Below, piece after piece: positions 1 to 44,500 of a stretch of DNA of 64,000 bases; the stretch's first letter is position 1, and the number at the start of each line of letters is the position of its first letter. The stretch is taken from positions 1 through 64,000 of the forward strand of contig FLMG01001044.1 in the NCBI GenBank assembly GCA_900088475.1. Reading direction: 5' to 3'. The notes under the pieces are model-generated. The model saw only the letters and a list, made by a program, of their open reading frames with translations. It ran no database searches and was not told the origin of the DNA. This DNA comes from Hyphochytrium catenoides (Eukaryota > Protista > Hyphochytriomycota). The translations under genes and the position numbers were made by a program.

Positions 1-154
1 GACACTGCGTCCTCACCTTGGAGTGCTCCCTCCTAGTGTCAGTACTCTTGCCACAACCCATCTAGCTTCGTCTGAGGGGGAGAGAGTGAGTGAGACCGAC
101 AATTAGGTGAGTTAATTCGACCCTCACCACTAATGATCCAGAGAAGCTAGGCAT

Positions 155-163
155 GAGGGGGAG
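155..163 (+). other. Polypurine tract preceding an LTR
   Basis: GAGGGGGAG immediately followed by TGTTGAG, the usual Copia PPT/LTR junction. Confidence 0.7.
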
Positions 164-438
164 TGTTGAGTGCGACAATGTTCGTTGTCAGTAGCACAGT
201 AGTCACTCTCTATACACACCTAGCTCTCAGGGACATAGACGTTACGGGTACACCTGTGTTATTCGGAGAAAGGGATGTGAGAAGAGTTTCCAGAAGAACA
301 CAGGAACAGCAGAGGAGAGAGAGATGATGAGAGAAGCTGGGCCGAGCAAAGATCTCGAGACCAGACTCTCAGGACTCAGCAATGATTCAGAGAAATCTCA
401 ATCAGATAGCAATACCCAGTCCCTTTGTTATCGTTTCA
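164..438 (+). mobile_element. Copia-type LTR (family A); 3' boundary uncertain
   Basis: Starts with TG after a PPT. The first ~100-120 bp recur at 4674 (+) and 6845 (-). The 3' part (413-447) recurs at 7757-7790. Confidence 0.6.
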
Positions 439-524
439 TCTAGGTTGATGTTAGAATTTATCATTGGATGGTGAGCACTTTGAATTACCATTGAGGGGTG
501 TCTGGATATACCGGAGAAAAGTTT

Positions 525-605
525 TGTACGCTCCGGGATTCGAACCCAGGAGCTCTGTCTTTGATGCCGACACCCTAACCAGTATGCAGCATACACCAAA
601 CGTAC
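525..605 (-). ncRNA. tRNA-like RNA (81 nt) in TRIM copy 1 3' LTR
   Basis: Acceptor stem GTACGTT/AGCGTAC plus discriminator A, T-arm CTGGG-TTCGAAT-CCCGG (canonical B box), TTTT a few nt downstream, and TATATAAATA about 21-30 nt upstream. Confidence 0.75.
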
Positions 606-824
606 ACTTAATTAATCTCCGGTTTTATTTATATACCAGGGTTTTTGTTGAATGTTCAGCTTCGACCCTTCACAAGAGGGAGTTCGAGCTGCGGGGAGGT
701 GTTGGAGTCTGAGGGCACAGCTATGTGGAATGTCGAACTGTGATCGACGCTGAAACCAAAAAGTGTACGGCGGACGACGCAGAGGGATAAATCCCTGGTA
801 AACAAAAACGGAGATTAGTCAAGT

Positions 825-905
825 GTACGTTTGGTGTATGGTGCATACTGGTTAGGGTGTCGGCATCAAAGACAGAGGTCCTGGGTTCAGATCCCGGAGC
901 GTACA
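825..905 (+). ncRNA. tRNA-like RNA (81 nt) in TRIM copy 2 5' LTR
   Basis: 7-bp acceptor stem, D-arm GTGT-ATGGTGC-ATAC, variable region AGGTC, T-arm CTGGG-TTCAGAT-CCCGG, discriminator A, TTTT at 910-913. The anticodon region is 9 nt too long and non-canonical. Confidence 0.75.
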
Positions 906-980
906 AAACTTTTCTTCGGTTTATCCTGACACCCCCCAATATTAATTCAAAGTGCTCACCATCCGTGATGAAATCTAACA

Positions 981-994
981 TGGTGTACGCTCCG
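981..994 (+). other. Primer-binding site TGGTGTACGCTCCG (TRIM copy 2)
   Basis: Directly abuts the 5' LTR end, begins with TGG, and is complementary to CGGAGCGTACA+CCA. Confidence 0.9.
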
Positions 995-1197
995 AGCGAT
1001 TTAACTCGGGAAATAAAGTGAGCCATTCGGTTCTGTGACCAAGGATGACCATCACAGATCCATTTGAATCTAGACCTTACAGAGTTCACTAGATTCCGGG
1101 GGAGTGTTGAACTGTGATCGACGCTGAAACCAAAAGTATACAGCGGACGACGCAGAGGGGAAAATCCCTGGTAAACGAAAACGGAGATTAGTCAAGT

Positions 1198-1273
1198 GTA
1201 CGTTTGGTGTATGGTGCATACTGGTTAGGGTGTCGGCATCAAAGACAGAGGTCCTGGGTTCAAATCCCGGAGC
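1198..1273 (+). pseudogene. tRNA-like copy with the 3' acceptor strand deleted (9 bp)
   Basis: Matches 825-900 but lacks GTACAAAAC before the T-run. Confidence 0.7.
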
Positions 1274-1516
1274 TTTTCTCCGGTTTATCCTGACACCCCC
1301 CAATATTAGTTCAAAGTGCTTACCATCCATGATAAATACTAACAGTTTTCCCCTTCTGCGTCGTCCGCTGTACACTTTTTGGTTTCAGCGTCGATCACAG
1401 TTAGACACTTCCCCGGATCTAGAGAACTCTGTAAGGTCTAGATTCAAATGGAACTGTGATGGTCATCCGTGGTCACAGAACCGAATGGCTCACTATATTG
1501 CCCGAGTTAAATCGCT

Positions 1517-1530
1517 CGGAGCGTACACCA
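1517..1530 (-). other. Primer-binding site TGGTGTACGCTCCG (TRIM copy 1)
   Basis: Identical to 981-994 and adjacent to the 5' LTR end at 1531. Confidence 0.88.
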
Positions 1531-1606
1531 CGTGAGAATTTATCATTGGATGGTGAGCACTTTGAATTAATATTTGGGGGTTTCTGGATATACCGGAGAA
1601 AAGTTT

Positions 1607-1680
1607 TGTACGCTCCGGGATTTGAACCCAGGACCTCTGTCTTTGATGCCGACACCCTAACCAGTATGCACCATACACCA
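1607..1680 (-). pseudogene. tRNA-like copy lacking the 5' acceptor strand and upstream LTR sequence
   Basis: The first 20 bp of the LTR are fused directly to TGGTGTATGG. The rest of the tRNA-like unit is intact. Confidence 0.7.
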
Positions 1681-1700
1681 GCGTTGATCACAGTTCAACA

Positions 1701-4673
1701 GATTGTGCTCATACAGAAGCTCAGGCATTACCACCCAGCTCTGTAAAGTTCATCATCATTCACCACACAAGACGGTGGCGTCTACTACCTAGATGCGAAG
1801 AACGTACCACATCTAGCTACAAGCCAAGGTGCACTATCTCTCGGCACACGCGTCGGTACGTTGTTCTACGCAAAAGGAATAAGTCAGAAGCCCGTCGTAA
1901 TAGGTACGCACCAATTCGGAACCAGCCTGGATGAGCCACCAATACACAACCACCAATCATAGTCAGTTACCATTTGGCATCGCCGCCTGGGGCACCTCAA
2001 CATTCCAGACCTCAGGGAACTAGCCAAAGTCGCTGAAGGCATTCAGATCAACCATGAGGACGCTCAGTTCTGCTCCGGATGCATTCTCGGTAAACTCACA
2101 CGCCGTAAGTTCCCCAAGAAAGCGACTCGCAGAGCTTCAAAACCCCTGGAGCTAGTTCACTCCGTTGTGGGAGTTGTCAATATCCTTAGCCTAGGAGGAC
2201 ACCGCTACTATGTTGTCTTTGTAGATGATCAAACCCGGCGGACGTCTCTCTACTTGAGGAAATCCAAAGATGAAGTGATTACTGAGTTGGCTCACTCCGA
2301 TGTGGGAGTTATCAGTACCCTTAGCCTAGGAGGACACCGCTACTATGTTGTCTTCGTAGATGATCCACCTGGCGGACGTTTCTCTATTTGAAAAAAAAAA
2401 GGTGAAGTGATTACTCACCTCCTGGACACGTTTTTGCGACTAGCGGAACGACAAACTGGATGTAAAATCCAGAAAACTCGAAGCGATCGAGGCGGAGGAC
2501 ACTGCTCCGAAGCCATGGAGTACTGTAAAACACTTGGAATAGTCCATGAACTCACAGCCGGTATTCACCAGCACAAAATGGCGTCGCTGAACGTAAACAG
2601 CGCATTCTTGTGGAATGCGCTCGCTGCATGCTCCACGCTGCAAAACCTCCCTTATCGTTTTGGGGAGAAGCCCTTCTTAGAACAGCAGCTCACCTTGGAA
2701 ACATGTATCCCACCTCAGCACTCAACAAGGACAACACAACAACCTATAAAATGTGGAAGGTAAAAATCCTGACTTGAGTCGTCTGCGTGTCTTCGGTTGT
2801 CAAGCTTATGGTCTCATCCCTGAGCAGGAACGGACCAAGATGGATGCTGAGACTAAGTACTATGTCTTTGTGGGTTATGCAGATCATTCAAACGCGTATC
2901 GCTTATATGATCCAGAGACAAAGAGAATCATTGAAAAGAGTGATGGCGCATTCAACGAGAACCACCAGAACGGATACGTCGAAACATCACCGCCACCCGA
3001 GGACCTTGACATACTCTTTGAGATACTAAATGACTCCCACGACGCGAGTCCAGCTCCAGTCGAAGATCCAAAAACCCAACTAAGACATGGGCCCGGCTTC
3101 GAAGTAACAACAGACATATCTGATCCAGCCAACCTTGACAACACCGAGGGGGAGAGATTTCGGTGTACGGAAGACGACACCGAAGATGAAGAAGAGATCC
3201 TACCTCCACGAAATGCAGATCATGCACTCTCGTCCACTAGTAGTGAAAAGTCTACACTGGATACACTATCGCTGGTAGATTCAATCCAAGTAGATTAGAC
3301 CGCCAAGTGTTAACCCCCGGAGGAGAACGCTCTCACTCTCCACCTATTGCCATCCAACCTTCTCGTATCCCACTACTACGAAGCCGCCTACAACAGGAAG
3401 ATTCCATCTCCCGTGCGGTTACAACACTGAGACAACATCTTACCCGCGAACCATCAAAGAGGCACTAAGTGGACCTCACGCCGAAGAATGGAGCGCTGCT
3501 ATTGCTAGCGAGTTGGCCTCGATGGCACAACATGATGTCTGGGAGCTTGTTGAACGGCCACCGGACGCCAATATGTTCGGGTGCAAATGGGTTTTCCGCA
3601 CGTATAACAGCGATGGCAGTCTCGACCGCTACAAAGCTCGTCTGGTAGCCCAAGGATACAACCACAGGTTTGGGGTTGATTACAATGAAGTTTTTGCACG
3701 TGTCGTCAGTTATGAGTCAGTGCGATGTCTTCTCTCATTGGCAGCCACATATAATCTCGAGATCCACCACGTTGACATCAAAACGGCCTTTCTCCATGGC
3801 AATTTGGAAGAGACGATATCTATGTGTCAGCCTCCTGGCTTCGAGCAACCTGGAGCGAGAAGAACATGCATGGTCTGCAAGCTAAAGCGGAGAGTCTATG
3901 GCCTCAAACAAAGTCCCCAGCAATACAATAAAGTCCTCGAAGGATATCTGCGTGATCATGGTCTCTGCGAGCCATGCGTCTATATTCGCAGTTCCAACGA
4001 TGGCTCCAAACCAACAATCATCTCTGCCTTCGTTGATGACACACTGATATTTGCTCCAGACACCACCAAAGTCATTCAAGTCAAGCAGCTGCTCGCGAAT
4101 CGCTTCGATGTCACGGACCTGGGAGAATTGCAATATTTTTTTGGGGTTGAAGTTCTTAGAGACCGACTAAATCGCAAGATATACCTTAGACAAACGAGAT
4201 ATATCCAAGACATACTGAAGAGATTTCGTATGGAAAAATCCAACCCAACCAGCACCCCAGCTGTGGCAGGGGAGCATCTTCCCATAGCGTGCGAGCTCCC
4301 TGCGTTGAGTCCGGCCGAAGAGCAGGAGTTACTACAAATTCCCTACCGCAATGCTCTCAGTAAGTCAACATATGGCCAACTTCCGGAATGTCCACTGGAA
4401 AGCGGTCAAGAGAATCTTTCGATACTTGAAGGGTACTAGCAGCTACGCACGATGTCTAGGGGGAGTTACGGTCACAACCTCAAGCTCTTTGCCGATGCTG
4501 ACTGGGCTAATGACACATTCATTCGTAAGCCGGTCACTGGATATTTATGACTCTTGGCACCGATGCTTTCACTTGGAAATGCCAAAAGTGGGACATTGTA
4601 TCGTCCTCGACAACAGAAGCTGGGTGCATCTCTCTGTGGACAGGATCCAAAGCATGCCGAACATATAACCCCT
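1701..4673 (+). mobile_element. Degenerate Ty1/Copia internal region (pol pseudogene: GAG-pre-integrase, integrase, RT, partial RNase H); gag and protease not recognisable
   Basis: WHRRLGH...CSGC at ~1975-2085; integrase YYVVFVDD and RSDRGG; LRVFGC...FVGY; RT motifs KARLVAQG, DIKTAFLHG, YGLKQSP and FVDD (4029-4040); RNase H FADADW (~4488). Domain order is INT-RT-RH, with many frameshifts. Confidence 0.95.
3513..4439 (+). pseudogene. Copia reverse transcriptase (RVT_2-type) ORF fragment
   Basis: 308-aa ORF with the characteristic Copia RT motifs, frameshifted before RNase H. Confidence 0.9.
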
Positions 4674-26556: not shown

Positions 26557-29500
26557 GCCAGCTAATCTCACACAAACAAACGTTTGGATGGACATCCCGG
26601 ATGCACTGGTGCACCTCACCCTTGACAATGAGGCAGTGTCCGTAATACACTATCAGATACGTGCGACAGGACTGCGTGCGCTCGCCGCAATTGGAGGCTT
26701 GGGAGACTCTGCACTAACCACCGGAGATAGAGATTTCCTCGCAACCAGAGTAACAGTTGATAGTACGCCATTTCGGCAGTCAGGAGCGCTAACGCAACCG
26801 CGCTTCGATGGCGAACGCACGCAAAACACACTATCAGGGACACTTGTGACTACGTTACCACGGGGAAACCATAGTGTCCGCTTGCAGTGGAAAAAGTTTG
26901 GCCCTAGCAGCATCAAATGGCTTGCTGGTCCCTCAATTCAGGCGAACCAGAGCTCAGAAGTGAGCCTTACGGTCCGAGGCAATCCAAAATATGTTTGGTC
27001 CCGTCAGCCTCTCACCCCTGCACGCTTGGACCGCAACTCCGAATGGCAAGATGTAGATGAGGAGCCTCTACAGATTGATCTACCTCAGCAGACATCCTTA
27101 GAGTTCAAGTATCGGGTCCCACTCACGGCGGATGTGCCCTACTTTCCTGAAGGTATCACGTCCCGAGTGTTATCTCCCAACTCTCAAAGGTGATTACTAA
27201 TCTCTTCCATGTCACATAGGGAACTCTTTAGGGGATACCGTAACGTCAGTACTCTCAGTGGATGAGGTGAAATACTACGAAACCCAGTCCACTTTTAGGT
27301 TGCTGACCAAGGGGTTACCAGTGGCTACTCTGCATGGCAGCATCCTGCTTACCCTCTCGGCGGGTCAGCACCAGATCAGGCTACTCTGGAAGAAGGTTGG
27401 GAAAAATGTTAGGGCATGGCGCTCTGTCCCCTCCTTTCTGGATGGCTTCGTTAGTGGGCGGACATTAGTGGCAGAAAGCCGCGAGCTAGTGCACGCATCT
27501 AGACAACTGACTCAAGGGAGTGTCGTCCCACCACCTTACATTCTCTCGAGTAGGGATGAGCTTGATCTATTTGGCTTTCGGGATTGGATTGACATAGTAC
27601 CTTCTCTCTTATCTTTCGAAATGCCGTCTTTGTCCATTGTACTCTTCCAATACCGGCTACCACAGCAAGCTGCTAGAGTGCTGCAGAAGACACAGACAGA
27701 AGAGGACGACCCGAAAACATCACCCATTCGTGTCGTCATTGACGGGGAGCCCTACCAGGAGCTTCCTGCTACAAGAGCTTGGAAAAGTCAACCTGACGAG
27801 GGCATCAAGGGTGAGCTTGTCCTTAGCCTGCCCCCTGGCACGCACTCGGCAAAGCTTCAGATTCGGAAATCTGTCTTCGATGATCTTCAGAGGGACTGGC
27901 TGGGGGCTAGGGAGCTTCAGTCACTTAATAGATTGTCTAAAGGGGAGTACCTGACTTACGCCCTTAGAACGAATGTTCCAGCTGTTCGGCTCCCGTCTCA
28001 TCTGAATCAGACGTTGGAAGACGTAAGTACTAGGATCCACGGCATTGAGGTTTTTGACAAGGAGGCTGGTATGCCTCTTGATTATAGCGTCAGCGTGAGG
28101 CTTGCGGTACAGTATGGCACTTTGAGGTTTGCTCGCAACTACAGCGGGGTTCATTATATCCAAGGCACAGGGGAGGACGACGCAGTTCTTGTGCTTGCCG
28201 GTAGTATGCCAGCCATCAATGATGTACTGGCTGGAGCTCTGTACACGCCCTACCTCCACTATCACGGGCCAGAACGGCTGCTAGTCTCAGTCATGGATGG
28301 GGACAGATCATCAGCCACCGAGGCCAAGGAACACATAGCACAACTTGAGTTTGTTGTGAAATCTGTGAATGATCCTCCATCTGTCGTGGTACCAGCAGCG
28401 CAGAATATGAGGGAGGACGAGCGACTCTCTATTCATGGGATCACGGTCTACGATGTGGATTGCATAGAGCACCTAGACTGTCAACTGGAAATAACACTTA
28501 AGGTTACAGCTGGCAGATTGCTCATAATGGACTCATTCAGCCACTTACTGACAGAAGAAGAGTCTCACTTTGGGTCAAATGTCCTTCGCCTTTCTGGGCC
28601 AATCCAAACTGTGAACCAAGCCTTGCGAGAAGTTCAGTACCTACCCTTGCCAGACTACAACTACCGACACCACCCAGAAGCGTTAGAGATTATTGTCGCG
28701 GACTTTCCGCTTGAAGGTAGCCAAAGACTGACAGCTTATGCCGTCATTCCTATCTTTGTCGCCCCAGTCAATGATGCCCCAATTATCTCGAAAGCTTTGG
28801 AACAAAGTCTCACCCTGGATGGGCTAAGGCTGAAGGGGCCTTCCTCAGTCACTCTGCAAGCAGATTTGGTGGCAGGCCATGGAGGATTCTGCCTCTCCAA
28901 CGCTAGCACTTCCGCTTCCAGTTGGACATTAAAGGGTTCCGCCGTAGAGGTCGGGGCGTTGGTGGAAAGGCTAGTGATGAATAACATTGACTCGAGCAGT
29001 GTAATGGGTTCAGTCCACTTCACCATTCATGATCAGTCCCTGCCAGTGCAATTGGCGGAGACATACATTCTGGAGTTCCGCCTGATGGAAAAGTCTGAAC
29101 GTAAGTAATCTATTGCAGACTCACATACAGAAGCGGAGTTCTAACTCTCGTATTATTTCAGATCCACGTCCATATCCGCGTATCTTGAGCGTCTCTCCTC
29201 AAAGCGGTACGTCTCAAGGCGGCACTAGGGTTGCAATTGAAGCCGAAAACCTGGGGAATGATACCATCTGGTGCCTATTCAACACCGTCAAAGTCCAAGC
29301 GACTACTGCCAATGGCACCGTCACTTGCCATACTCCTCGTTTGACTGAAGGTTCCCGTGTGCCACAAACAGTTCTGCTGCGACTCCTCACTTCTGAGGGT
29401 CTGCTTTCCAGCCGCGCCCTATACCGCTATGAAGGTAAGTAGTAAAGTTAGGCCGTGAAATCTGATTTGCTCTCACTTGTTGTAAATATCAAGTGGGACC

Positions 29501-32500
29501 AACTGTAGCGATGGTTACGCCGACCCTTCTGGACAGAAGAAAGCCCACTGTAGTCACAATTCACGGAAAGGACTTTAAACCGAGGGTTGAGATGGCTTGC
29601 AGGGCGGGAGAAGCCGTGGTCCGCGGTCTGTGGCTAAATGACTCAGCCGTCACTTGTGAATTCCCGCCTATGGGCTGGATGCCTTCACAGCTCCTGGAGT
29701 TCACTTCAAATGGCCGAGAGTTCATCAGCACTGGTCACACCTTGGCAGTTCCCGGTACAGTGAATAAATACTTGATAACGTACAAGGCACTGCTTGGTTC
29801 TATTAGCACTCACCTTCTCCCCTCAGGCAACTGTACCGGGTACGTGATTTCTCCAGAGTCGCCGTACGAAAGGGATACCCTAGAGGTAGAAGTCATAGGA
29901 ACCTTTTTGACGACGGGGATGGCCCCTGCTTGTCATATCGGTGGAACCAATGTTTCTGGCCGACCTCTTAATGAGACGTTCTTCTCATGTAAGCTTCCGG
30001 AAGGGATGATAGGAGCAACAGATTTTCAGATCACCCTCCACGGGTCTGTCATCACTTCAGAAGGGTACCGAACGTTACACATAAGAGGTAAGGAACACGT
30101 TATGGTTACGCGCAGAGATCAGTCCATCGTGCTAATTGTCCTTTTGTCGTTAACATGTAGAGCGCCTTTTTATAGAAAGCATAAGCCCTGCCTTTGGGTT
30201 CTCCACCGGTGGCACTCTCGTGACGATAAAGGGGAAAGGTTTCCTAGATAGTCCTTCCATTACCTGTCAGTTTGGGCTTGCTGCAATACCTGCCCGGACT
30301 GTTTCTTCCTCCGAGCTCGTCTGCGAAGCCCCGCCGAATCATGCCGGGTTGGTAAATGTTTCTGTGGAGGATTCGAACGGACTGAAGGTTTCTTTCACTG
30401 ATGCCTATGAGTACATTGATGCCCCAGATATCTACACAATTAGCCCGCGCATGGTCCCTGCCGGTGAAGCCGGAGTGCTCAGGTTGTATGGACACGGCTT
30501 CCTTGACTCGCTTTCTACGGGTTGCAAGGTCAGCAACCAGCTATTTTCAGCAAAATGGATTTCTTCCAGTCAAGTTATCTGCATGGTAGACCCAGATATA
30601 ACGTCTGGCCTCCATACAGTGGAGCTTACTCTCAACGGTGTGGACTACATCCCAGCTGGCGTCGACCTTCATGTCTACAGAATTCCTGAAGTGCAAGGGC
30701 TTTCTCCCACCAAAGGGTTCGCAAACGGTGGAATGAGAATCCTTTTTCAAGGTGCTGGCTTTTTCCCGGCTCCAAACATTGCCTGCCGTTTTGGGTCCGC
30801 TATCATACATGCAGAGTACTTATCGCAGGGAGAGATAGCTTGTGTTGCACCTGCAACGACTTCTTTTGGGGAAGTGCCGGTCTATATCTCGATGGACGGC
30901 ACGCACTTTAAAAGAACCGGGCATTCATACACCTTCGTTGAGGATCCTGAGATTGGGGCAGTTTTCCCTCTCAGTGGCCCCATTGATGGTGGGTCTAAGC
31001 TACACTTGCGCGGGAGGGGACTCAACAACTCAAACTACCTCTGTCTTTTTAGAAGTGTGAACAATCGCACTATCCAAGAGGAAGTGCCTTCAACAGCATT
31101 CGCCGAAAACGAAATGACGTGCACGACACCACCTTGGCAAACGCCTGAAGATGTACACCTCAGCCTGATGCTTGTCGACACTGGGGAAACAGCGAGGTCG
31201 TTCGTGACCTTCTCCTATTCCGAACGCCCGGTGTTGACCTCTATTAGACCCGGCGCCGGGCTTACTTCTGGGAACACCACGTTAGCCTTATTTGGCTCGC
31301 ATCTGCTAGCTCTGTCAGGGTCTATCCGTTGCGCTTTCTACTTTCCTTTATCAAATCAAACTATTACGGTTGAAGGGGTAGCATTGGATGCTGGATATGC
31401 AAGATGCTTGACACCTCCGAGTCCGCACAGTGCTACAACAGCGTTTGTTTCGATGTCTCTCAACAATCACGACTATTCGAAGAACCAGGTTCGGTATCGA
31501 TACCTTTCGGAACCGGACATCCATGAGTTGTCGCCAAATTTTGGTAGCGTGAGGGGTGGAACATATGTGACTGTTCTTGGTAATAACCTTATAGCTGGGA
31601 ATGACCTACTTTGCCTCTTCGGTCAAAGGGGCGTCCTCGCAACGATGATCCACGACAACATTCTGATTTGTGCAACTCCAGCTGCAGAGCATGAGGAAGA
31701 GGTTCCTTTTGCCCTTTCTCTCAGTGGAGTTGTGATCGCTCAAAGCAATCTTACATTTACCTACATCAAGGAAGCCCGAGTAACAGCCATCTGGCCTCCC
31801 ATTGGCCCTGAGACAGGTGGCACTCTAGTAACGGTGACGGGTGGTGACTTTCTCAACTCTTCTACCATTCGTTGCAAAATGCATGAAGACCTAAAAGTGG
31901 GGCGTTTCGTTTCGTCGGAAGAAATAGAATGCATCACGCCGAACGGTACTAGAGATGAAGTTTCTATGCTTCAGGTTTCCTTAAATGGCATTGACTTTCT
32001 AGAATCTGCCCAGATCTTTCAATATGTTGCGGTCATTACTCTGTCGGAACTCGAACCCAATAGAGGCTTCGCAGCTGGCGGAACTCTTATCAATGTTTAC
32101 GGCGACGGCTTCGAGGATTCTGACTCCTTCTACTGTCGATTTGGGAGTCAGCTTACACGGGCAAGGTGGCTGACGAAAACCCACGCCCAGTGCGTGGCAC
32201 CTCAAGCGGAGGTCGTGGGAGTTGTTATCTTGGAGTTAACGGCCAATGGGGTCGATTTCACTGCCGACAAACTCACTTTTGAGTATGTTGAGGACCCAGT
32301 TCTCATTGCCGCACATCCCAATCACAGCAGCGTCCTAGGTGGGGCCTTATTGACAGTGGAGGGTGCTAACTTCGTAAATTCGAGCGCGCTGAGTTGTACC
32401 TTTGGCAAGGAGTCTGTCCCAGCCGCATACCTGTCTCCTACTTCCCTGACGTGTCTCACCCCTCCACACGAAGCTGGACCAGTGCCTCTGGCGGTTGGGC

Positions 32501-35500
32501 TAGGCGGAAGTCTGATGCCACCCGATCAATCACTAACCATTTTATTTCATGAAGCCATGCTTGAAGATGAAAGAGATGCATCTGCAGAGGATGTACAAGG
32601 GAAGTTGGAGCAGGATTTCCGTATTCTTCTGCTTCAGGCAGCAGCGGAGGCCAAGACAAGAAGAAATCTTTTCGATCTGAACCCTTCCTATGGACCTAGA
32701 AATGCTACAACCTCTATCAGAATTTACGGACCGTTTACAACGTTGACTCGGCAGCTCCGCTGTCGATTTGGATCGGATGAAAGACCGGCAGTAAGAATAT
32801 CAAGCTCTGAGGTACATTGCGAAGCTCCACCCGTTAACAACAGTTTGAGTGCGTTGCCTCTTGCTCTCTCATTCAATAGAGGGGAATATCTAGAAACTTC
32901 GCAGACGTTTTACTACTATGACGAACCGAAAATCAACTCCATAACGCCTGTGGCCGGGCCGAGGGATGGGGGTACCCGCGTCTACGTCTTTGGCTCAGGA
33001 TTTATCCATAATGGCCTGTCCAGGTGTAGGTTTGGGACAGAAACGAGTCGTCCCACCTATATTTCTAGTCAGGAGCTGATGTGTGCTGCTCCTTCGCAGA
33101 AGTCTGGCGGAGCAGTTGCTTTTTCTCTTTCGATGAATGGGCAGCATTTCACAGATAGCCAACTACTCTACCACTACTACTCTCCCCCAACTCTCCTAGA
33201 TATCCTACCGCCTGCTGGGGTCATCACTCACATGAAGAGTTTCCACTTAGTAGGAGAGGGATTTGTTCCTGAACTACCTCTTTGGATTAAGCTCGGGGTT
33301 ACTCTGGCTTCATGTAGTGCCCACAACTCTACTTCAGCCAGTTGTGGCCCCCCAGACACCGATCTAGCAGTAGGACCCCACGCAGTCAAGCTCTCACAAA
33401 ATGGGCAGGACTTTGCCAGTGCAGTGCCTCTTTTCACGGCTATTCCGTCTCCTGTCATCTATTCAATCTTGCCGAAGATGGTTCCAGCTTGGACTGAAAG
33501 CGATCTTTATCTCGACATCCAATCTATCCCAGAGAGCGCGGAGCTATCATGTAAGGTTGGAGAGGCGTTGGTGCCGGCAATTGTACAAGCCAGGCATAGG
33601 ATTTCCTGCAGAACTGATGCTACACTACTACCAGGACTTCACACCGTCCAACTTGTGATATATGGAGTAACTTATGGCTCCAACCATAGCACTGTCCAGG
33701 TTTACAGCCCACCAGAGATAAGAGCCATTGAACCGAAAGAGGGGCCCTATGACGTAGTAACTAAAGTCACCATACTGGGGGTCGGTTTCTTTTATTCTTC
33801 AGCGATGCTTTGTCGGTTTGGAGAGTTGCACAGCTATGCGGAATTTATCTCAGAGAATGAGATAGCTTGCCACGCTCCTTCTAGCCCAAGTGCTCACGAA
33901 GTAGAGGTATCCTTCGCGCCAGATGGTGTACACTTTAGGTCTCCTGGGCTGACATTCACTTACACTCCTGGTATTGAGGTGTTGGATGTGTCTCCTTCCT
34001 TAGTGCTCACGAGCGGTGGTTCACGAGTAGTCGTTCGCGGCCGGGGCTTCTTCGCTGCAATGCATTGCCGGTTGAGTAGTCTGACAAACGCCAGTCTTTA
34101 CAGCCTCGCAGCTGCTACAGTCCTGTCAAGTAATGAAGCAGAGTGCATCACCCCAAAATGGAATTATAGTGAAGAGGTCAGGCTTAATGTGGTCCATGCC
34201 CCGGAGGAGATTCCGAAAGGTTCAGGCGCGATTCTCCGCTATATTCCACAGCCTGAAGTAAGTCACCTGTGGCCCACGGCTGGGCTCAATACTGGTGGAA
34301 CCTCCGTCACCGTCACTGGAGCTCATATTTGGGAACCAAGCGGGACGACGCGTTGCTCGTTCGCCTTCCCTGAAACAGGAAAGACAATTCTAGTGAATGG
34401 GCGCAGGTTGACGGCAGAGCAGATCGAGTGCATTTCACCTCCTGCCCCCACGAACGCCACCAAGGCCATGGTGGCTATCTCTCTGAATGGTGGTGTTGAC
34501 TTCTCAAGCCGAAGTCTTCGTTACAGCTATCTAATCAAGCCCATAATAACTGGGACCACACCCACGTTCGGTGGAGCGGAAGGGGGTACTCCAGTGACAA
34601 TCCAGGGCTCAGATTTTCCGCTGGCAGCAATCAACGTAATTTGTTCCTTTGGCGGTCAGATGAGCGCTGCCATTCGCCTAACGTCATTCGCAATGGTGTG
34701 CGTATCCCCTCCCGCCGATAGTCTGGGGCAGATGAACGTTTCATTAGTTCTCGGTGATCTGGAGGCAACCATTGGCTCCTTTATGTTTACCTACACCCCA
34801 ACAGCTCGCATAAAGAGGATAAAGCCAGAGAGAGGCACGGCATCTGGAGGAACCCCGGTGATAGTCGAAGGCTCTTCATTCCGTAACTCTACAGCCTTAA
34901 GTTGCAGGTTTGGTGAGGAAACGAGGCCAGGGAAGTTAGTGACCGAAGAAACTATTGAGTGTTTAAGCCCCGCGGGTCAGCCAGGGTCTATGGTACCTCT
35001 ACAGGTCTCTCTGAATGGGGTTGACTTTATTCAGTCATCGCGAGTATTTGAGTATTTGGCAGTCATGAACCTCGACAGACTTCATCCCACCCATGGGTCT
35101 CTCAATGGCGGTACCGTAGTAAATGTCTATGGCCATATTTTTGTCGATTCTGTCAGTTTGGAATGCAGCTTCGATTCGAACTTGGTCCCTGCAATCTGGA
35201 TCTCTTCCTTTCACATACAATGCCTGTCACCTCCGATGACGACAAGTAGAGCTGTAATGCTTAAGCTGACGGAAAACGGCATAGACTTCACGTCGGTGGG
35301 ACTATTATTCAACTACGTGGATGATGTTAAGGTGACGGGATTAACTCCTGTGCACGGAAGTGCTCTTGGCGGTATGTTGGTGACCGTGAACGGGGAGAAC
35401 TTCCTTGACTCTGACGGACTCTCGTGCACCTTTGGAGAAGATGTAGTACCTGCTCGCTTCGTATCTTCCACTTTACTTACCTGCCTCACTCCTGCTTGCA

Positions 35501-38500
35501 CCCCTGGGCGAGTTCCATTTGGTATCTCGTTGAATGGCGTCGAGCGCTCTACAGCTCCTCTTTGGTTTGAGTTCCTGCATCCAGTGCAAGTTCAAAACAT
35601 TCTTCCAGAAAGAGGACCCATCACAGGCGGGACGGACATCACCGTGTCTGGATATGGTTTTGTGAACGTTTCGACCCTATGCTGTATATTTGATGATATT
35701 CACTTGGTCCCAGCCCGTTTCGTGTCCTCAAAAAAAATTCTATGCCGTTCGCCCAAGACTGCCCGCCTTGGAAGGATGGCCTTAGAGGTATCGATCAACT
35801 CTCTAGAGAAAACGTCTGATCGTGTGACATTCGAAGCAACTCCTGAGATTGAGCTGTTTTCTGTATCACCTGCCAAAGGCTCTCCGTATGGCACCAGTCG
35901 CGTAATTCTGACAGGTTTTGGATTCGTCAAGAACTCCTACCTAGCCTGCAGAGTTGGCAGACGCACCGTGGTTACAGCTCACTGGTTGTCTCCCTCAAGT
36001 ATCGAATGTGTTCTTCCACCTCCAGACAATCCCGGTAGCACATATATAGAAGTCACCAACAACCGTCTAGATTATAGCACGTCTCAAGTCCGCTTTGACT
36101 ACATTTTGCCGTTAGCACTTTCTTCAATATCTCCCACCGTCGGAGTGGCGAGTGGTCAAACCCCAGTGACGATCCGAGGGGCCGGCTTCGACGACAGAAA
36201 TGCACAACTGCACTGCCTTTTTGGGGCGGTCCTTGTTCCTGCTATTAAGATTACTTCACAAGGCCTGACTTGCATATCGCCTCCACACGTCCCTCGGGCC
36301 GTCAACGTCAGTATTGTTCAAGGTGGTCACATGGAGTCAAGAGTGAAGTTCCAGTTCAGCTATATACCGGACCCTTTCATCACCCTCTTACGCCCGCGGG
36401 AAGTAGTGGAGAATACTGTGACGGAGATTTACGTTGAGGGAACCAACTTCATAGTAACAGAGGTCATCTATTGCCGCTTTCAGGGCGAAACTCTAACTGA
36501 GGCCTTATTGGTAAGTCCAACTCAGCTTACATGTCTTACCCCGCCACTGCGAAGAGGCCATGTGACAGTTGATGTGACTTTCAACGGAGTAGATTTCAGT
36601 AATATGGCTGACTTGAAGGTGATTCGGGCACTCCATGCAGTCAGTATTAGGCCTCAGCAAACATTCCCTGAAAGCGCGGCAATAGTGGTGACGATCGGCT
36701 CTAATAGCCCTGACTATTTGGATATCTGGTGTGAGTTCAATGGAGCTTATCGGTCTCTAGCCACGCACTATTTAGAAGGGAAGCTCTCTTGCGAACGACC
36801 ACGTTTGCCGCCCGGTCGACACAGAATAACCCTTGTCACCAATAGCGGTCATAGGGTAGCTTCGGCCTTGTACTTCAAGGTCTACCCAACTCCGTTGCTG
36901 AGATCTGCTAGTCCGCCCGCAACGTCCACGGTAGGAGGGTCTCTGATTACCCTCAAAGGTGCTAACTTTCCCAATGAAATGGCTGTCACTTGTCATTTCG
37001 ATGGCATAGCAAGTCCAGCTCATGTAGTCAACTCTACCACTTTACTTTGTACTTCTCCGGAGCGGTCCGTTGGTTCGGTACGACTTTGGCTGGCGTACGA
37101 TGGGGTAGCAAAAACGTCGGATTTCGTTCAGCTCAGTGTCGTAAACCCTCCTTGGCTGAATAGCGTTGAGCCTCAGCGTCTTAGCAGTGCTGTGAGCTCA
37201 TTCATACAAATCCAGGGGAATAACATCCCTGGGGAAGGGAATTGCTTCTGCATTCTCAAGTCAGGCCGAATCCCAGGGGTATGTCAAAAAAATGGCTTTA
37301 TAGAATGCTCTATGGAGCGACTAGAACCAGGCACGCACAGTATATGGGTGGAGGTCAACGGCGTGAAGTCCTTGAACTTCAAGACGTTTACTGTGGTCCA
37401 TAGCCCTTTAATAACCGGAATATACCCAATGCAAGTTCCTGCCCTGGATGGCCTGCAGGTACAGGTGCTTGGTAGGCTATTTCCCAATAACAGCAATCTT
37501 GGGTGCACGATAGGTGACGCCCCGGGGGTGGCGTCCTTCGTATCTCAAGATCTACTTCTTTGTGGGATTCCCGCCATTATTCCCGGAAAGTACGAGGTAG
37601 CGGTGACAATGAACGGCCACCTCATGAGAGCGAATGAATTGTATCTAGAGGTACTCAGCCCGCCGCTGGTCACTGATGTGGAGCCGAAAGGTATCAACAA
37701 GGCTGGAGGGACACGGCTGACTGTGTCGGGGTCCCACTTTGGTGATAACCCTTCCTTACTTTGCAGCTTCGACGCCATCAGCATCCGTCCTACAGTATTA
37801 AGCAACCGCAAGCTCATCTGCATCTCTCCACCCACAGAAAGCAGCACGGTATCATTCACGCTGATGGATGGTGCGATCAAGCGCCATTTAACAAATCCGA
37901 GGCTACTACTAAGCCGCACCGCCATTCGTATCCATTCTATTTATCCCCTTGCTGGACCGACGGGCATTGAAGGAGAAGTAAATGTCACTATTGAATCATC
38001 TGGGTTGACAGAGAAAGTCTTTGTGCGGGTGGGAGACTATGGCCCGACAGAATGCCAACTCGTCGAATCCAGCATCGCACGTTGTGGCATCAAGTCTCAC
38101 CAGTCAGGGTACATCCCTCTCGAGGTCTCAACAAATGGAAGAGACTGGTTCAGAGCACCCACGGAATACTACTTCTATCCTGGCCTCCAGGTCGTGAGCG
38201 CGGAGCCTTCCACATTGCTAGAAGGATTGACTGCATCATTGACTGTCACGGGTTTGGGTTTCCAAAAGCACCCACACCTGTTTGCACGGATAGGCGATGG
38301 TGGTGCCCCTTCTGAGTGTAGTGTTCTCTCACCTAGGAGAGCCATCTGCCAAATGCGCCCTCGTCGGCCGGGCACCTATACGTTATTTTTGAGTGGGAAT
38401 GGAGTTAACTATCGAAAAGTAGAAGTCAGCAATGTCACCGTGGCGTCGCGTCCTGTCGTGACTGCTGTGAAACCCTCCAAGGCAAGCATGGGAGGGGGAA

Positions 38501-41500
38501 CGGTCGTCACGATTGAAGGCACGAACTTATTCTTTTCCCCGTTATGGAGTTGTTTATTTGGCTCAATATCTGTAAGGGCTGTGTTTGACGGCCAGACGAG
38601 AGTCAAGTGCCTCTCTCCCTCTCACCCCGTTGGTCTAGTTAATCTCACGCTAGCACTGGGCTTGGTAGTAGTGCCCTCGTCGCATACTTTCCGCTTCCAA
38701 ATGCCCCCCACCATACACTCCATCTTCCCAACGCTTACTACGGTCAATCAGTCCATTCAAGTCTTAATCTCTGGATACTTTGGCGAGCAACTTGAAGACC
38801 TCGACTGTCGGTTTGGAGAGGAGGTGATCTCTGCGGTCTCTGCAATTAGTGAGAGTGAAACGCTGCGGTGCCAATCTCCTGTACACCTGCAACCTGGTCC
38901 GTATGCCGTCGGACTTGAATCACGGAGTTCCGGAGAAAGTTATAAATCGGCCTTCAAGTTCACTGTTATCCCAGGGTTCAAAGTGCTGACAGTTAAGGTG
39001 ACAGAAGGTGCATCTGGAGGGGCAAGGGTTATTATAAAGGGTGAGGGCTTCGTCGACGTACCCAGATTATCCTGCCAGATGCGTGATTATGTTGTGCTAG
39101 GTGAATTCATGTCTTCACAAGAGGTGTCTTGCATGTTCTCAACCATAGTGAGGGGAGCCTCGATAGGCTTATCCTTCAATGGACAAGACTTCGTCTCAGT
39201 CTACAATATCCCAAAAGTTAGTGAGCTATCCTTCAACACACTTTCGGTGCGGAAAGGGTATTTGAAGGGTGGTACGTTGCTTAACATTCGCGGTCGATTC
39301 CCAACCGCCGGGGAAAGGCTCTGGTGTCGTTTCGGCTCAAAGGATTCGCCAGCTTCTGTGCTCTCTTCCACTGAAGCACAATGCAGATCTCCACCGTCGT
39401 CGGACCTGGGGAATGTGTCTCTGACGATGCATGGGCATGGATCTGGTGGTAATTTCAAGTTGCATGGGGCTGCTCTTTATGAATATACCGAGGATTTGAA
39501 GATACGCTCTTACTCGCCAAGTGTAATTCACCCATCCCAGACGTCCAATCTGATTGTAGAGGTCGAAAACTTAGACAGTTCCAATGCCCTCTGCCGTTTT
39601 GGCAACCTGATAACGGTGGGTATGGTTAACGGAGTCAATGTCTCCTGCGCGGCGCCCAACAATGTGACCATTGGAAATGAGTACACCCTGGAGGTCTCTA
39701 TAGGTCATGAAGAGTTCGTGTATGTTGGCCGGGTCCAAGTGGTTCAAACACCGGTCATTACAGACGTCTCGCCCTTGATCCTCTCGACCGCTGGCGGGGT
39801 CGTAGTCATGTTGAAAGGGGTAGCGTTCAGGCAGTCAGCCGACCTGATCTGTCGCTTTAATAGTGAAGTGATCACTCCAGCGCTTTTCCTAGCAAGTGAT
39901 GCTGTAGAGTGTGCATCCCCGAAACTGCCCAATGGACAGACATCCATAGAGCTCTCGGTTAATGGAAAAGACTTTGTCTTGGCCCCGCAAATGCTTCGGA
40001 CGATCCAGCCGCCTCGCATTCTCTCCATGGAGCCTGACTCAGGTCTAGTAACTGGAGGTACGAGAGTGGAGTTCGTCTTAGGCTCCTTGACCGACGCGTC
40101 CCCTTCTTGGAAGTGCTTGTTTGGGATCATACCGGCTGCTGTGACGGTCATCGGCCCTCATAAGCTGCTCTGTGTGGCCCCTCCACAAGTAGAGAGTCAA
40201 GTAGAAGTTCGTCTGCAAGTACACGACCAACTTGAGGCTGAGGGACCGTCGCGTTACTTTACCTACTTTGTGGCGCCAGAGGTCAGAGGATTAGAGCCAT
40301 CACTCGGCAGCACTGCGGGTGGAACAAGGGTTACCATTATGGGGCAACATTTCCAGCTCAACCACTCTTACACCTGCCACTTTGGCAAAATATATGTGTC
40401 TGACGCCGTAGTTGTTTCTGGAGAAAAGATGGTTTGCAAAACACCGGCTTCGCCTAGGGGACTCTTACCTGTAGGAGTAAGCAGCAACAAGCACGATCTT
40501 CCAGAACAACCTTTACTATTCCGCTACGTTGCCCCCATGATTTGCCTAAGTTTCCACCCAATCCAAGGACCCGCAAAGGGTGGGACGTGGGTTACAGTCA
40601 ATGGACTGCATTATCCGAACTCTATCCACATAGGTTGCAAGTTTGGGGATATACAGGCCACCAGGACGATTTGGATGTCTCACACTTCCATACAATGTCT
40701 GTCTCCACCCTCAAACGCATCTAGCGTAACTATCTCTGTGACGGCGAATGGGGAGGATTACGAGCCCGTGAAGTTCTTCCGTTATTACTACAACCAAGGT
40801 GATCCAGTGCTTCATTCCATTTCTCCTGCCCATGGTAGGATTGAGGGAGGTACCCAGGTGTACGTCAGAGGAAAGAACTTCATGAGCGCACACACTCTCT
40901 CATGTCAATTTGGTAATATGCTGGCGCCGGCAGGGTTCTACAATAGTACAACGCTTCTCTGCCGGTCACCTCCGACCTCACGACCAATGCGATTGCGCTT
41001 TCAAGTCAAGATCGAGGAGCAGACGGCGGAGAGCTTATCTGAAATTATCTTTCAGTACGTACTGCCAGTGCGGGTAGATGCTGTACATCCAGATGTCCTT
41101 ACTATTGGCTCCATGCAATCGTTAGTCGTGACCGGCACGGGATTTCTAAACACCTCTTCTATAGTTTGCAGAATTGAAGGTCTCGGCATAGTGCCTGCAG
41201 AGTACATCACTTTCTCAAAGGTCCGCTGCAACAGCATAGCGATCCCTGCCAGAAGTACAATCTCCCAGCGATTGGAAGTTGCGGTATCCCTTAATGGTCA
41301 AGAATTTTCTCCTTCGACAGCAACCATACGGGTGCAACGACACCTTCCTGGCATCACAGACATAACCCCATCTATAGGACCGAGCACGGGAGGTACGATC
41401 CTCACCGTAAGTGGCTACGGCTTTCTTGACCGCCACCGAAGTCGTTGTCACTTCGGTAATGTTTCTGTGGAATCCCTGTATATTTCACCCAGTGAAATGC

Positions 41501-44500
41501 TATGTCCAGCCCCCGAGCTACGCCCCGGAGCTTATCCCATTGCCTTCAGCTACGCAGAAGCTGATATCGGTGATGAGATTACCATGCAATCCCCACTACA
41601 ATACAATGTCTACGGTATAGTTCGAGTAGTAGGGCTATCCCCGCTGTCAGGGTCAGAGAGGGGTGGTACTACGGTAACTATAAAGCTCCACGGTGAGGTG
41701 TCAGGTTCGCTAAGACCCTTTTGCCGCTTTGGAGAGGTTACGGTATCAGCTTCTCTAATAGGGCAAAGCCTACATTGCACCTCACCGCCATACAACCCTG
41801 GCGTGGCATCACTAGCCTTTTCCTTCAATGGGGCAGATTTCCATGAGGTACCTGCAAATTTCACGTATACTAAGGTGATGGATGTTAAGGCCCTGAATCC
41901 ATCCCACGGGCCTATCAAAGGTGGGACTCCAGTGACCATAACCGGTTCTAATTTCCTGCCCAACGCTACCTGCCGCTTCGGCCCAATGCCCGCTAAGAGA
42001 TCCACCTACATGAATAGCTCCCACCTAATCTGCATTACTCCAGCTGTGGAAAATCCGGGTACCAGGCTCTTGTCGATAAGCACCAATGGACTGGAATATA
42101 TCAGCTTCCGTCCATACCACTATAGAGAAGAGCCGACCATCTCTGGACTGGCTCCCGCTGTCATAATGTCAGGACCGTATGCAGAGGTCTCTATCACCGG
42201 CGTGAACCTTGGAGTTTCTGAGGTTTCGTGCCGATTTAACTCAACAATGGTTGCAAAGGGCCGCCGTCAATCGCCCGTGATGATCAGCTGTAGCCTCCCT
42301 GATGTTCCAGAAGGGCCTCTGGAGGTTGAATTGTCCACTAACGGGATCGACTATGTTCGAGCCCCTGAGCCTTTGAGGGTCCTCCGGGCGTTGCAGCTTT
42401 CACAAGCAGGACCCCTAGCTGGTCCAATAAAGGGCGGAACTATGATTACTCTATTGGGCACTGGTTTTAGCCGCTTTGGACGATTGCAATGTAAATTCGA
42501 CCTGGTTGTAGTCTCGGGTATTATTGTGTCCGCCACTGAAGGGAGATGCCCCAGCCCACGAGGAGCTGTCGGCAAAGTACCGCTTGCGATATCCATCGAC
42601 GGTGTGACGTTTGCCTCGTCTGGGTTTGAATTCGAATATACTCCAGATCCAAGAGTGCGCGTGCTAAGTCCAACGCATGGCGCTGTAGAATCCAATACCA
42701 CTTTGACTCTTATCGGCGACGATCTCTCGATAAGGGGCTCAGCCTGGTGCAAAATGGGCAACTCAATTGCGCCAGCGAAAGCTCTAAATAATTCAAGCAT
42801 TCAGTGCAGCTCACCGAAGGGACTTAGTCCTGAAATGGTGGAACTAGAGCTTTCAGTGAACGGACAAAACTTCGTACGTTCAGGATTCTTTTTCCGCTAC
42901 TACCAAACTCCTTCCGTCCGCTCAATTGAGCCCTCACTGGGTAGCACACAAGGAGGTACCATAGTGACGGTTTCCGGTGCGGATTTTCCAAACGTGCTGC
43001 CTGTAACGTGCCGCTTTGGGCAAGTGGAGGTCGTGGGCTACTGGATTTCCGAGGTTCGTGTCACATGCCCGGTGCCACAGCTACGGCCCGGCGCTGTGTC
43101 TGTAGGCCTCAGTTTCAATGGTCAACAAACTTATGGCTCACTGAGCTTCCGCGTTCACGAGGTGGTAAGAGTTCGTACCGTAGCACCACTTACAGGCTGG
43201 AACATAGGTGGCAAGGAGCTGGTACTTCTAGGTCATTTTCCTTTCTCGTTTGCCCTATCCTGCAGACTCGGTGGCAACGATGTGGATGCCGTTTATATCA
43301 ACAGTAGTTGCATCAAATGTATAACTCCACCCAACGCGCCTGGAAGGTACGCGGTCGAAGTATCGGCAAATGGAAAGGACTACGTTCCCACCGGCTCTTA
43401 TTTCCAATACGCCATGAAACCTCGGATCGAGACTGTTCAGCCCTCCGTTTTGGTCCGTGGCGTTTCTCACTCGCTTCTCATTAATGGAACACACCTTGAG
43501 GACACACTAGTATGTCATTTTCGTGCTGGTGATTATCTGATAGCCGTGACAAATGTGGAGATGCAATCTACCGGACAAGTGACGTGCCCCAGTCCAAAGA
43601 TTGGACCTGATGATGGCATGAAGGATCTTGAGTTGCGCTTGATGGATACTGCCGCGAGTGATGGTTCGAACACAATCTCTCTTAAGGTCACCTCTCAACC
43701 TTACCTTTCCTATGTGGAGCCTGACCGCGGGCCCGATACGGGCGGTACCCTGGTCAAGTTGCGCGGTTACAATTTCCCAAACACTCCATCGCTACGATGC
43801 AGATTTGGCCATGTCCTTAGCCCTCAAGCTATATTTGTTGATGACAACACCATTACCTGCATAACTCCCAAAGGACAGGCAGGTCAAGTCGCTGTAGCCC
43901 TTCTAGATGAAACGACTTCAATGTCATTGGTCTCGCAAAGCGTTACATTCGCTTATCAGGTGGAAGTCACGGTGACCGATCTCTGGCCAGGAAAGGGTTC
44001 GGTCAAAGGTGGAACATTGGTTTATTTGGCGGTAGAGCGTGTAGAGATGTCCGTATTCACCTCTTGCCGATTTGGGAAGGTTATTGGTCCTGCATCTCTT
44101 GTGTCGCTCGGAGTCATCTCATGCGTGGCTCCCAGAGCTGACTCAGCGCAAGTGATCCAAGTTGCAGTGAGCAATAATGGTAAAGACTTTTCTGCAACAA
44201 GCAAGCCCTTCCAATATGTAGAGCAACCGGCAGTGGATGGTATCGAGCCGCAAGAAGGTCCCATCACAGGTGGAACTTTGATAACCGTTAGAGGAGGGCC
44301 ATTTGAGAATGACTCTATTTGCCAAATTGGAGAAACACGAATGGAACCAATCATCAAGAACGAGTCTGTTGTCATCTGTCGGACGGCCAAGGTGGAGACA
44401 GTTGGGTCACAAGCAGTGACTATCAGCTCTGTTACCACTGGGGTTGCCTACTCTACCTCATATTTCAGATTTCTACCCCCAGTTCGAGTAATCAGGGTAT

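Follow-up and report, generated by a model that had tools for sequence, protein, structure and literature searches.

Nearly all retrotransposons with long terminal repeats (LTRs), and all retroviruses, prime their reverse transcription with a cellular tRNA; the known exception, Tf1 of S. pombe, uses a fold-back of its own mRNA. The first 11 nucleotides (nt) of the Tf1 mRNA fold back and are then cut off by RNase H, and no tRNA-like fold, RNA polymerase III (Pol III) unit or CCA is known to take part. Levin reportedly gave the length of this self-primer duplex, in 1995, as 11 nt. TRIMs (terminal-repeat retrotransposons in miniature) that carry a tRNA-derived Pol III unit in their LTRs have been named Helenus and are referred to collectively as TRIMp3 (Kojima 2024, Biology 13:119, PMC10886601). 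That survey covers Helenus in fungi, animals and Selaginella, with no mention of oomycetes or stramenopiles; it reports most of the units as non-functional tRNAs and host-tRNA priming as the rule for all described families (PMC10886601). Its section 3.6 raised the idea that the tRNA-like sequence could be the primer, and no complementarity to the corresponding primer-binding site (PBS) was found in any Helenus (PMC10886601). Here we analysed a TRIM family of the protist Hyphochytrium catenoides, starting from a 64,000-nt window (the whole stretch under study: positions 1 to 64,000 of contig FLMG01001044.1, assembly GCA_900088475.1), in which the PBS is complementary to the 3′ end of a tRNA-like unit in the element's own LTRs once CCA is added to it. 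We estimate, with a probability of about 0.55, that a CCA-tailed RNA made from this unit, and not a cellular tRNA, would have primed reverse transcription of the family.

A primer-binding site complementary to the LTR's own tRNA-like unit

The original prediction, made from the letters of the window alone, placed a TRIM of 614 bp with a 124-bp internal region on the + strand at 731-1344, and the direct repeats, the PBS and the polypurine tract (PPT) bear this anatomy out. The element is shorter than 1 kb, has two direct TG...CA LTRs (250 and 240 bp, 95.4% identical over 239 aligned nt), a PBS right after the 5′ LTR and a PPT right before the 3′ LTR, and has no evident coding capacity, with only mechanical open reading frames (ORFs) with GTG/TTG starts of at most 122 amino acids (aa). 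The reverse complement of its PBS is CGGAGCGTACA followed by CCA and matches the 3′ end of the unit plus CCA at 14 of 14 positions in both copies in the window, exactly as had been claimed. The CCA is non-templated, because the DNA after the unit reads AAAC and then TTTT; the templated part of the match is thus 11 nt and takes in LTR nt 165-175, where the unit ends. Given a PBS that starts with TGG, the chance of 11 further matched bases at a fixed position is about 2e-7, and the match between PBS and unit is real rather than accidental.

The same 14-nt word occurs at 26 exact sites in the assembly, namely 24 TRIM PBSs and two CCA-ended LTR copies that are described below. TGG is retained in most PBS copies, and within the internal region the PBS is not conserved above its surroundings. 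The resemblance to a tRNA end reaches beyond the PBS: together with the adjacent stretch, and read as reverse complement, it forms a T-arm-like hairpin, an acceptor strand, the base A and CCA (CCGAG TTAAATCG CTCGG AGCGTAC A CCA).

The unit has a canonical acceptor stem of 7 bp (GTACGTT/AGCGTAC) with discriminator A, a canonical T arm (CTGGG/TTCRAAT/CCCGG) and an exact B box, GGTTCAGATCC (GGTTCRAATCC). The A box is partial. The Helenus class, which the original prediction had named, is the right one. T-loop position 57, always a purine in tRNAs, is A or G among the copies. The D and anticodon parts are aberrant: a proper anticodon arm is lacking, and the acceptor and D regions are set apart by about 9-11 additional nt. 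Aligned to host tRNAs the unit scores 69, compared with 38±4 for shuffled sequences, and ARAGORN recognizes it only at the relaxed -ps95 setting, where it is labelled tRNA-? and given an anticodon of 4 nt. As there is no canonical cloverleaf with a 7-nt anticodon loop, the unit is a tRNA mimic and not a functional decoding tRNA gene.

Most copies, for example at 621-628 on the minus strand of the window, contain a TATATAAA motif (LTR nt ~69-76) about 25 nt upstream of where the unit starts; it has been deleted from the 5′ LTR of the + copy. It fits either a TATA-assisted Pol III promoter or an RNA polymerase II promoter. Each LTR has a single run of four T (T4) on the sense strand and several runs of A, a difference that is not statistically meaningful, although such avoidance of T4 is compatible with read-through by Pol III. 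The original prediction envisaged that Pol III transcripts stopping at T4 would supply the primer, and that those reading through to the second LTR would supply the genome; such a two-fate scheme would be compatible with the sequence, and only that.

We counted at least 85 units in which T loop and 3′ end are intact, and more than 100 LTRs, in the genome; four of the five full copies with clean ends are flanked by 5-bp target duplications. No second LTR family bearing a tRNA was seen among about 115 fetched loci, and two metagenome scans, with a unit pattern and with a PBS/internal pattern, gave no matches. The two LTRs of an element are 92-98.4% identical and copies differ from each other by about 10%; LTR pairs being closer than copies, the family must have amplified for a long time in this host with this PBS, and much of the divergence arose in transposing lineages. 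Lineage-level diversity was assessed in seven elements, at those columns in which an element's two LTRs are the same. Variable columns were about eightfold rarer in the unit, spacer and T4 (2 of 92) than in U3 and U5 (27 of 157; Fisher p = 1.6e-4). The spacer and T4 had none, and T-loop position 57 was one of the two in the unit. Differences that arose after insertion were mildly lower in the same region (2.4% versus 4.2%, p = 0.057). The whole unit with its terminator, and not the promoter boxes alone, is under purifying selection in the transposing lineages.

Which RNA primed reverse transcription

Two LTR copies, on C1131 (L077) and C2516 (L078), comprise LTR nt 1-175, end exactly at the discriminator and continue with CCA and then with unrelated DNA. 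They are the only such sites genome-wide, and no copy truncated at the discriminator base is followed by anything else; that truncation at the RNase Z site should twice, independently, have been followed by CCA has a chance of about (1/64)^2, counting nothing but the CCA. Beyond its CCA, L077 continues with antisense Copia-type sequence, comprising the LTR, the PPT and the internal region, and the locus looks like a chimeric cDNA. In L078 (C2516), at 6-2547 (+), the CCA-ended fragment breaks a long transposase-like gene, which has ORFs of 351, 127 and 319 aa and the motif ..FDHKQKWVPMYHRETQTQRFGKRG...

A third trace is found in the PBS of a copy on C4384 (L067/L076), which reads TGGTGTACGCTCCGGGAT and then the canonical downstream sequence: 18 nt, including TGG, have been overwritten with a perfect copy of the unit's CCA-bearing 3′ end, and the match to the copy's own LTR unit runs for 19 contiguous nt. 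Retroviral plus-strand copying of the tRNA primer stops 18 nt in, at 1-methyladenosine 58 (m1A58), and a tract of 18 nt is thus the expected footprint of a primer. This TRIM fragment (LTR nt 80-250, PBS and 35 nt; 1200-1800 of L076) lies inside a Copia reverse-transcriptase coding region. On another contig, of 1 kb (L050), an LTR is followed by the full reverse complement of the unit and U3, with TGT instead of TGG. This is what plus-strand read-through of a long primer would give, but it may be an inversion or an assembly artefact.

The CCA-ended copies, the converted PBS and the purifying selection that keeps unit and terminator speak for participation of a CCA-tailed unit RNA in reverse transcription. 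The TRIM would be moved in trans by a Copia-type element. The unit would be transcribed from its A and B boxes, with the TATA-like motif about 25 nt upstream in most copies, to the T4 that lies 4 nt past the discriminator; RNase Z would then cut after discriminator A of the intact acceptor/T-arm top half, and CCA would be added. The resulting ...CGGAGCGUACACCA-3′ end would anneal to the 14-nt PBS and be extended by the partner's reverse transcriptase, and the PBS would be re-copied from that primer. Transcription, processing and priming are each inferred, and the primer may have been either a free tRNA-like molecule or the CCA-tailed terminus of some longer TRIM transcript. The copies that run from LTR nt 1 to CCA also allow the CCA-tailed 3′ end of TRIM genomic RNA to serve as primer in trans. 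We put at roughly even odds the broader proposal that a single Pol III tRNA mimic in the LTR serves as promoter, as 3′-end signal (RNase Z cut plus CCA) and as source of the minus-strand primer.

A number of observations weigh against priming by the element's own RNA. Promoter function alone may account for the selection on the unit. In L078 the ORF is restored if CCAT is counted as a 4-bp duplication, and the CCA there could be target sequence or microhomology; the insertion was not a standard integration, as the family normally duplicates 5 bp. A duplication is lacking in L077. The two CCA-ended copies begin at LTR nt 1, unlike a free Pol III transcript of the unit; the recorded RNA therefore included U3 and was longer than a free 84-nt tRNA-like RNA. 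Most copies hold the 14-nt match and not the 18 nt expected if the PBS were routinely re-copied. Covariation between the PBS and the unit's 3′ end, a proposed check on the prediction, is absent among the family's copies, because both are invariant and show private mutations only. One element has G to C in the acceptor strand of both LTRs and an unchanged PBS, which fits a primer supplied in trans but does not argue for one.

Further points of this kind concern the putative RNA. ARAGORN at default settings and Rfam (E<=1) did not call the unit a tRNA in this region, its fold is no better than that of shuffled sequences (z = -1.5), and with CCA added the minimum-energy fold pairs the 3′ end with unit nt 8-15 in an alternative helix that would hide it. 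Related sequence in public runs was found only as contigs of two soil metatranscriptomes, 85-90% alike. One of these contigs spans 867-1014, across T4 into the PBS and internal region, though such contigs cannot reveal ends, strand or CCA and may stem from DNA carry-over. Finally, the 61-Mb assembly is fragmented (4759 contigs), and because of this a host tRNA gene could be missing from it.

Unit nt 8-16 include TGGTGTATG, in which TGGTGTA equals the first 7 nt of the PBS and is able to pair with the CCA-tailed 3′ end. The same motif is the breakpoint of a deletion derivative in L064.

A host tRNA gene missing from the assembly is the basis of the best-surviving alternative, which we nevertheless regard as unlikely: an ordinary host tRNA with the same 3′ end, its gene unassembled or with an unusual T loop, primes the element, and the LTR unit is a promoter captured from it. 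Host tRNAs prime all other Helenus families (PMC10886601), and our whole-genome search with a tRNA model scored 63 of 1710 candidates rather than the full tRNA set. The census therefore rests on pattern searches that need no model, and these argue against a host primer. The 11-mer CGGAGCGTACA has 129 sites genome-wide (92 + 36 + 1), and each of those outside TRIM BLAST matches was fetched and read; ten are random, scattered and not in tRNAs, and all others belong to TRIMs, either as units or as PBSs. When the T loop served as anchor and the acceptor strand was left free, or was allowed two mismatches or all G-U alternatives, the searches returned TRIM units only, and a search of the assembly anchored on the acceptor stem returned no tRNA. 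Even with G-U pairs included, no tRNA gene with a canonical T loop in the assembly pairs with more than 8 nt of the PBS, and none of the 19 genuine host tRNAs that ARAGORN recovered as a positive control matches it over more than 5 nt. A conventional tRNA ending in ...CGGAGCGUACA-CCA, the observation that the original prediction had named as fatal to itself, is thus absent from the assembly census. Moreover, tRNA genes are normally multicopy, and no decayed pseudogene of such a tRNA was seen.

Several near-miss host candidates were examined and rejected. Those on C667, C134, C2197 and C1580, and ten DCGGAGCGTACA sites, are not tRNAs, and those on C1871, C2145, C2636, C742, C3425 and C1941 are diverged TRIM LTRs.

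It is also possible, if improbable and ranking behind a host primer, that the complementarity is a historical relic: unit and PBS would share an origin, for instance through a primer copied into the LTR by read-through or recombination, and the match would have had no priming role since, the element being primed in another way. The T-arm-like copy next to the PBS does show that primer-derived sequence gets written into the element, TGGTGTA in the 5′ part of the unit hints at past exchanges, and the lack of PBS/unit covariation is in keeping with a relic. Against this, the long-lasting amplification to more than 100 LTRs must have used some primer for this PBS and nothing else in the assembly fits it, and neither the selection over the whole unit and terminator nor the conversion on C4384 would be expected of a relic.

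Least probable is self-priming in cis as in Tf1, where the unit's 3′ end in the 5′ LTR, lacking CCA, would fold back to form 11 bp with the PBS core, 76 nt downstream of it, and then be cut, TGG being left over from an older tRNA-type PBS; the 11 templated nt equal the length reported for the Tf1 duplex, both partners sit on one RNA, and fossils that begin at LTR nt 1 imply that the processed RNA was not a free tRNA-like molecule. However, TGG is kept in most PBS copies and lengthens the match to 14 nt, the C4384 tract includes TGG in a match of 18-19 nt, two fossils carry CCA after the discriminator, and with the unit cut away the 5′ end would lose R, so that strand transfer would have only about 9 nt available.

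The suggestion that the embedded gene is a private source of primer thus found partial support, in the absence of a fitting host tRNA gene from the assembly, in the CCA-ended copies, in the converted PBS and in the purifying selection on the unit and terminator; the PBS and the unit do not covary. Should priming by the family's own CCA-tailed RNA be correct, the element would be freed from host tRNAs and would represent a third solution to the primer problem, beside the borrowed tRNA and the Tf1 fold-back. A captured tRNA-derived Pol III unit could then take over a step of replication, and the family would offer a natural system in which to study how primers are chosen, how the PBS is re-copied and how tRNA mimics are processed.

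The locus in the window and its Copia-type surroundings

The second TRIM copy, predicted on the minus strand, is indeed present (441-1700) and its PBS is identical to that of the + copy, but it is rearranged: the 5′ LTR is deleted internally and the 3′ LTR is split (Table 1). The split was caused by insertion of the block 646-1344 into the 3′ LTR of the minus copy, which separated 1345-1407 from 441-645 and left a 5-bp duplication, AAAAC. The inserted block is taken as 646-1344 because an 85-bp piece next to the + TRIM shares its AAAAC duplication. Of the 81-nt units that had been placed in every LTR, those of the + copy's 5′ LTR and of the distal piece of the minus copy's 3′ LTR are complete. 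In the + copy's 3′ LTR a 9-nt deletion takes out GTACAAAAC, that is, the last 5 nt of the unit and the AAAC spacer, and the 5′ LTR of the minus copy holds a remnant.

Table 1. Coordinates of the two TRIM copies and associated features in the window
Feature	Position	Strand	Remarks
5′ LTR (TG...CA)	731-980	+	250 bp; direct repeat with 1105-1344
81-nt tRNA-like unit	825-905 (LTR nt 95-175)	+	ends ...CCCGGAGCGTACA
AAAC spacer and T4 (910-913), Pol III terminator-like run	906-913	+	T4 is the sole sense-strand T4 per LTR
PBS TGGTGTACGCTCCG	981-994	+	exact complement of unit nt 71-81 plus CCA
PBS-adjacent stretch	995-1010	+	stem one compensatory pair off the T stem of the LTR unit
Non-coding internal region, 124 bp	981-1104	+	ends in PPT-like purine run GGGGGAG (1098-1104)
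3′ LTR	1105-1344	+	240 bp; unit 1198-1273 only
Foreign LTR-like piece, 85 bp	646-730	+	within the same 5-bp duplication (AAAAC) as the + TRIM
Minus copy, 5′ LTR	1531-1700	-	internal deletion of LTR nt 23-~103; unit remnant ends at 1607
Minus copy, internal region	1408-1530	-	PBS at 1517-1530
Minus copy, 3′ LTR, proximal part (LTR nt 1-~63)	1345-1407	-	severed by insertion of 646-1344
Minus copy, 3′ LTR, distal part (LTR nt ~59-250)	441-645	-	complete unit at 525-605

The 85-bp piece (TGTTGAATGTTCAGC ... GGGGAGG TGTTGGAGTCTGAGGGCAC...) recurs next to TRIM LTR ends or fragments, at 646-730 in the window, at ~1290-1375 of L076 and at ~151-165 of L052. Either a second mini-element or a component of a composite element may be represented by it.

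The whole minus copy, in turn, lies within the 3′ LTR of a Copia-type element and is flanked by the duplication G(A/G)TTG. This LTR starts with TGTTGAGTG after the PPT GAGGGGGAG at 153-165 and ends with ...TTCATCA at ~1754; the Copia-type sequence around the TRIM cluster lies at 1-440 and 1701-1754 of the window. Other copies of this Copia-type LTR family have the PBS GGTTATGGGCCCA, complementary to the anticodon arm of initiator tRNA (half-tRNA priming). The neighbouring Copia-type LTR elements and the TRIM have in common the terminal TGTTGA..., the PPT GGGGGAG and 5-bp duplications. As its termini and PPT resemble those of the TRIM, such a Copia-type family is a possible, and to judge by these resemblances a likely, helper of the TRIM.

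The stretch TGGGCCCATAACC, which follows a TRIM-type LTR in L052 and L036, was considered as an alternative PBS and rejected, as it is the PBS of an inverted Copia-type element that abuts the LTR. Elsewhere in the window, a tandem duplication of about 135 bp (repeat families D3 and D6) lies at 2149-2396, where a Copia integrase region has degenerated. One ORF of 6643 aa extends over 30220-50151 (+), and the neighbouring ORF 27258-29108 has a weak cadherin-like match. A Pfam search with four ORFs of the window gave no usable match.

Comparison with known systems

Mimics of tRNA that are processed as tRNAs or take part in reverse transcription are known outside LTR elements. The tRNA-like 3′ element of MALAT1, mascRNA, is a non-decoding mimic with an intact top half that is processed by RNase P, RNase Z and the CCA-adding enzyme, and in the Mauriceville retroplasmid a tRNA-like CCA end takes part in starting cDNA synthesis. 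Neither is an LTR element, and neither is known to use its mimic as a primer annealed to a PBS, as is proposed here for the TRIM. The Copia-type elements of H. catenoides would be primed by a 3′-truncated initiator tRNA, and their PBS GGTTATGGGCCCA is unrelated to that of the TRIM.

Tf1 and Tf2 of S. pombe resemble the TRIM, as read here, in that the primer comes from the element's own transcript and that a templated duplex of about 11 nt forms in the 5′ region of the RNA. In contrast to Tf1, the complementary stretch in H. catenoides is the 3′ end of a tRNA-like unit and the full match needs CCA; this stretch would fall about 70-80 nt into a Pol III transcript, compared with the first ~11 nt in Tf1. 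In Cassandra, the unit is 5S and not tRNA-like, the primer is a host tRNA, and the embedded RNA is not known to be complementary to the PBS. This plant 5S rRNA TRIM is nevertheless similar in design, as the Pol III gene in its LTR provides promoter and terminator and the small-RNA unit defines R (PMC10886601).

Searches of the literature returned no description of an LTR element that encodes its own primer, and a string search of the Kojima consensus file with four words of 10 to 12 nt from the unit and PBS gave no match. By structure, the element is a TRIM of the Helenus/TRIMp3 type. It is shorter than 1 kb, has a tRNA-derived sequence with A and B boxes in each LTR and multiple solo LTRs, carries a short non-coding internal region bounded by PBS and PPT, and makes 5-bp duplications as fungal and plant Helenus do. 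It differs from them in its host, a protist, so that tRNA-bearing TRIMs are extended to a protist lineage, and in its PBS, which fits its own unit exactly and which no host tRNA gene in the assembly fits. The family is thus an example of the complementarity between PBS and own unit that Kojima (2024) sought and did not find.

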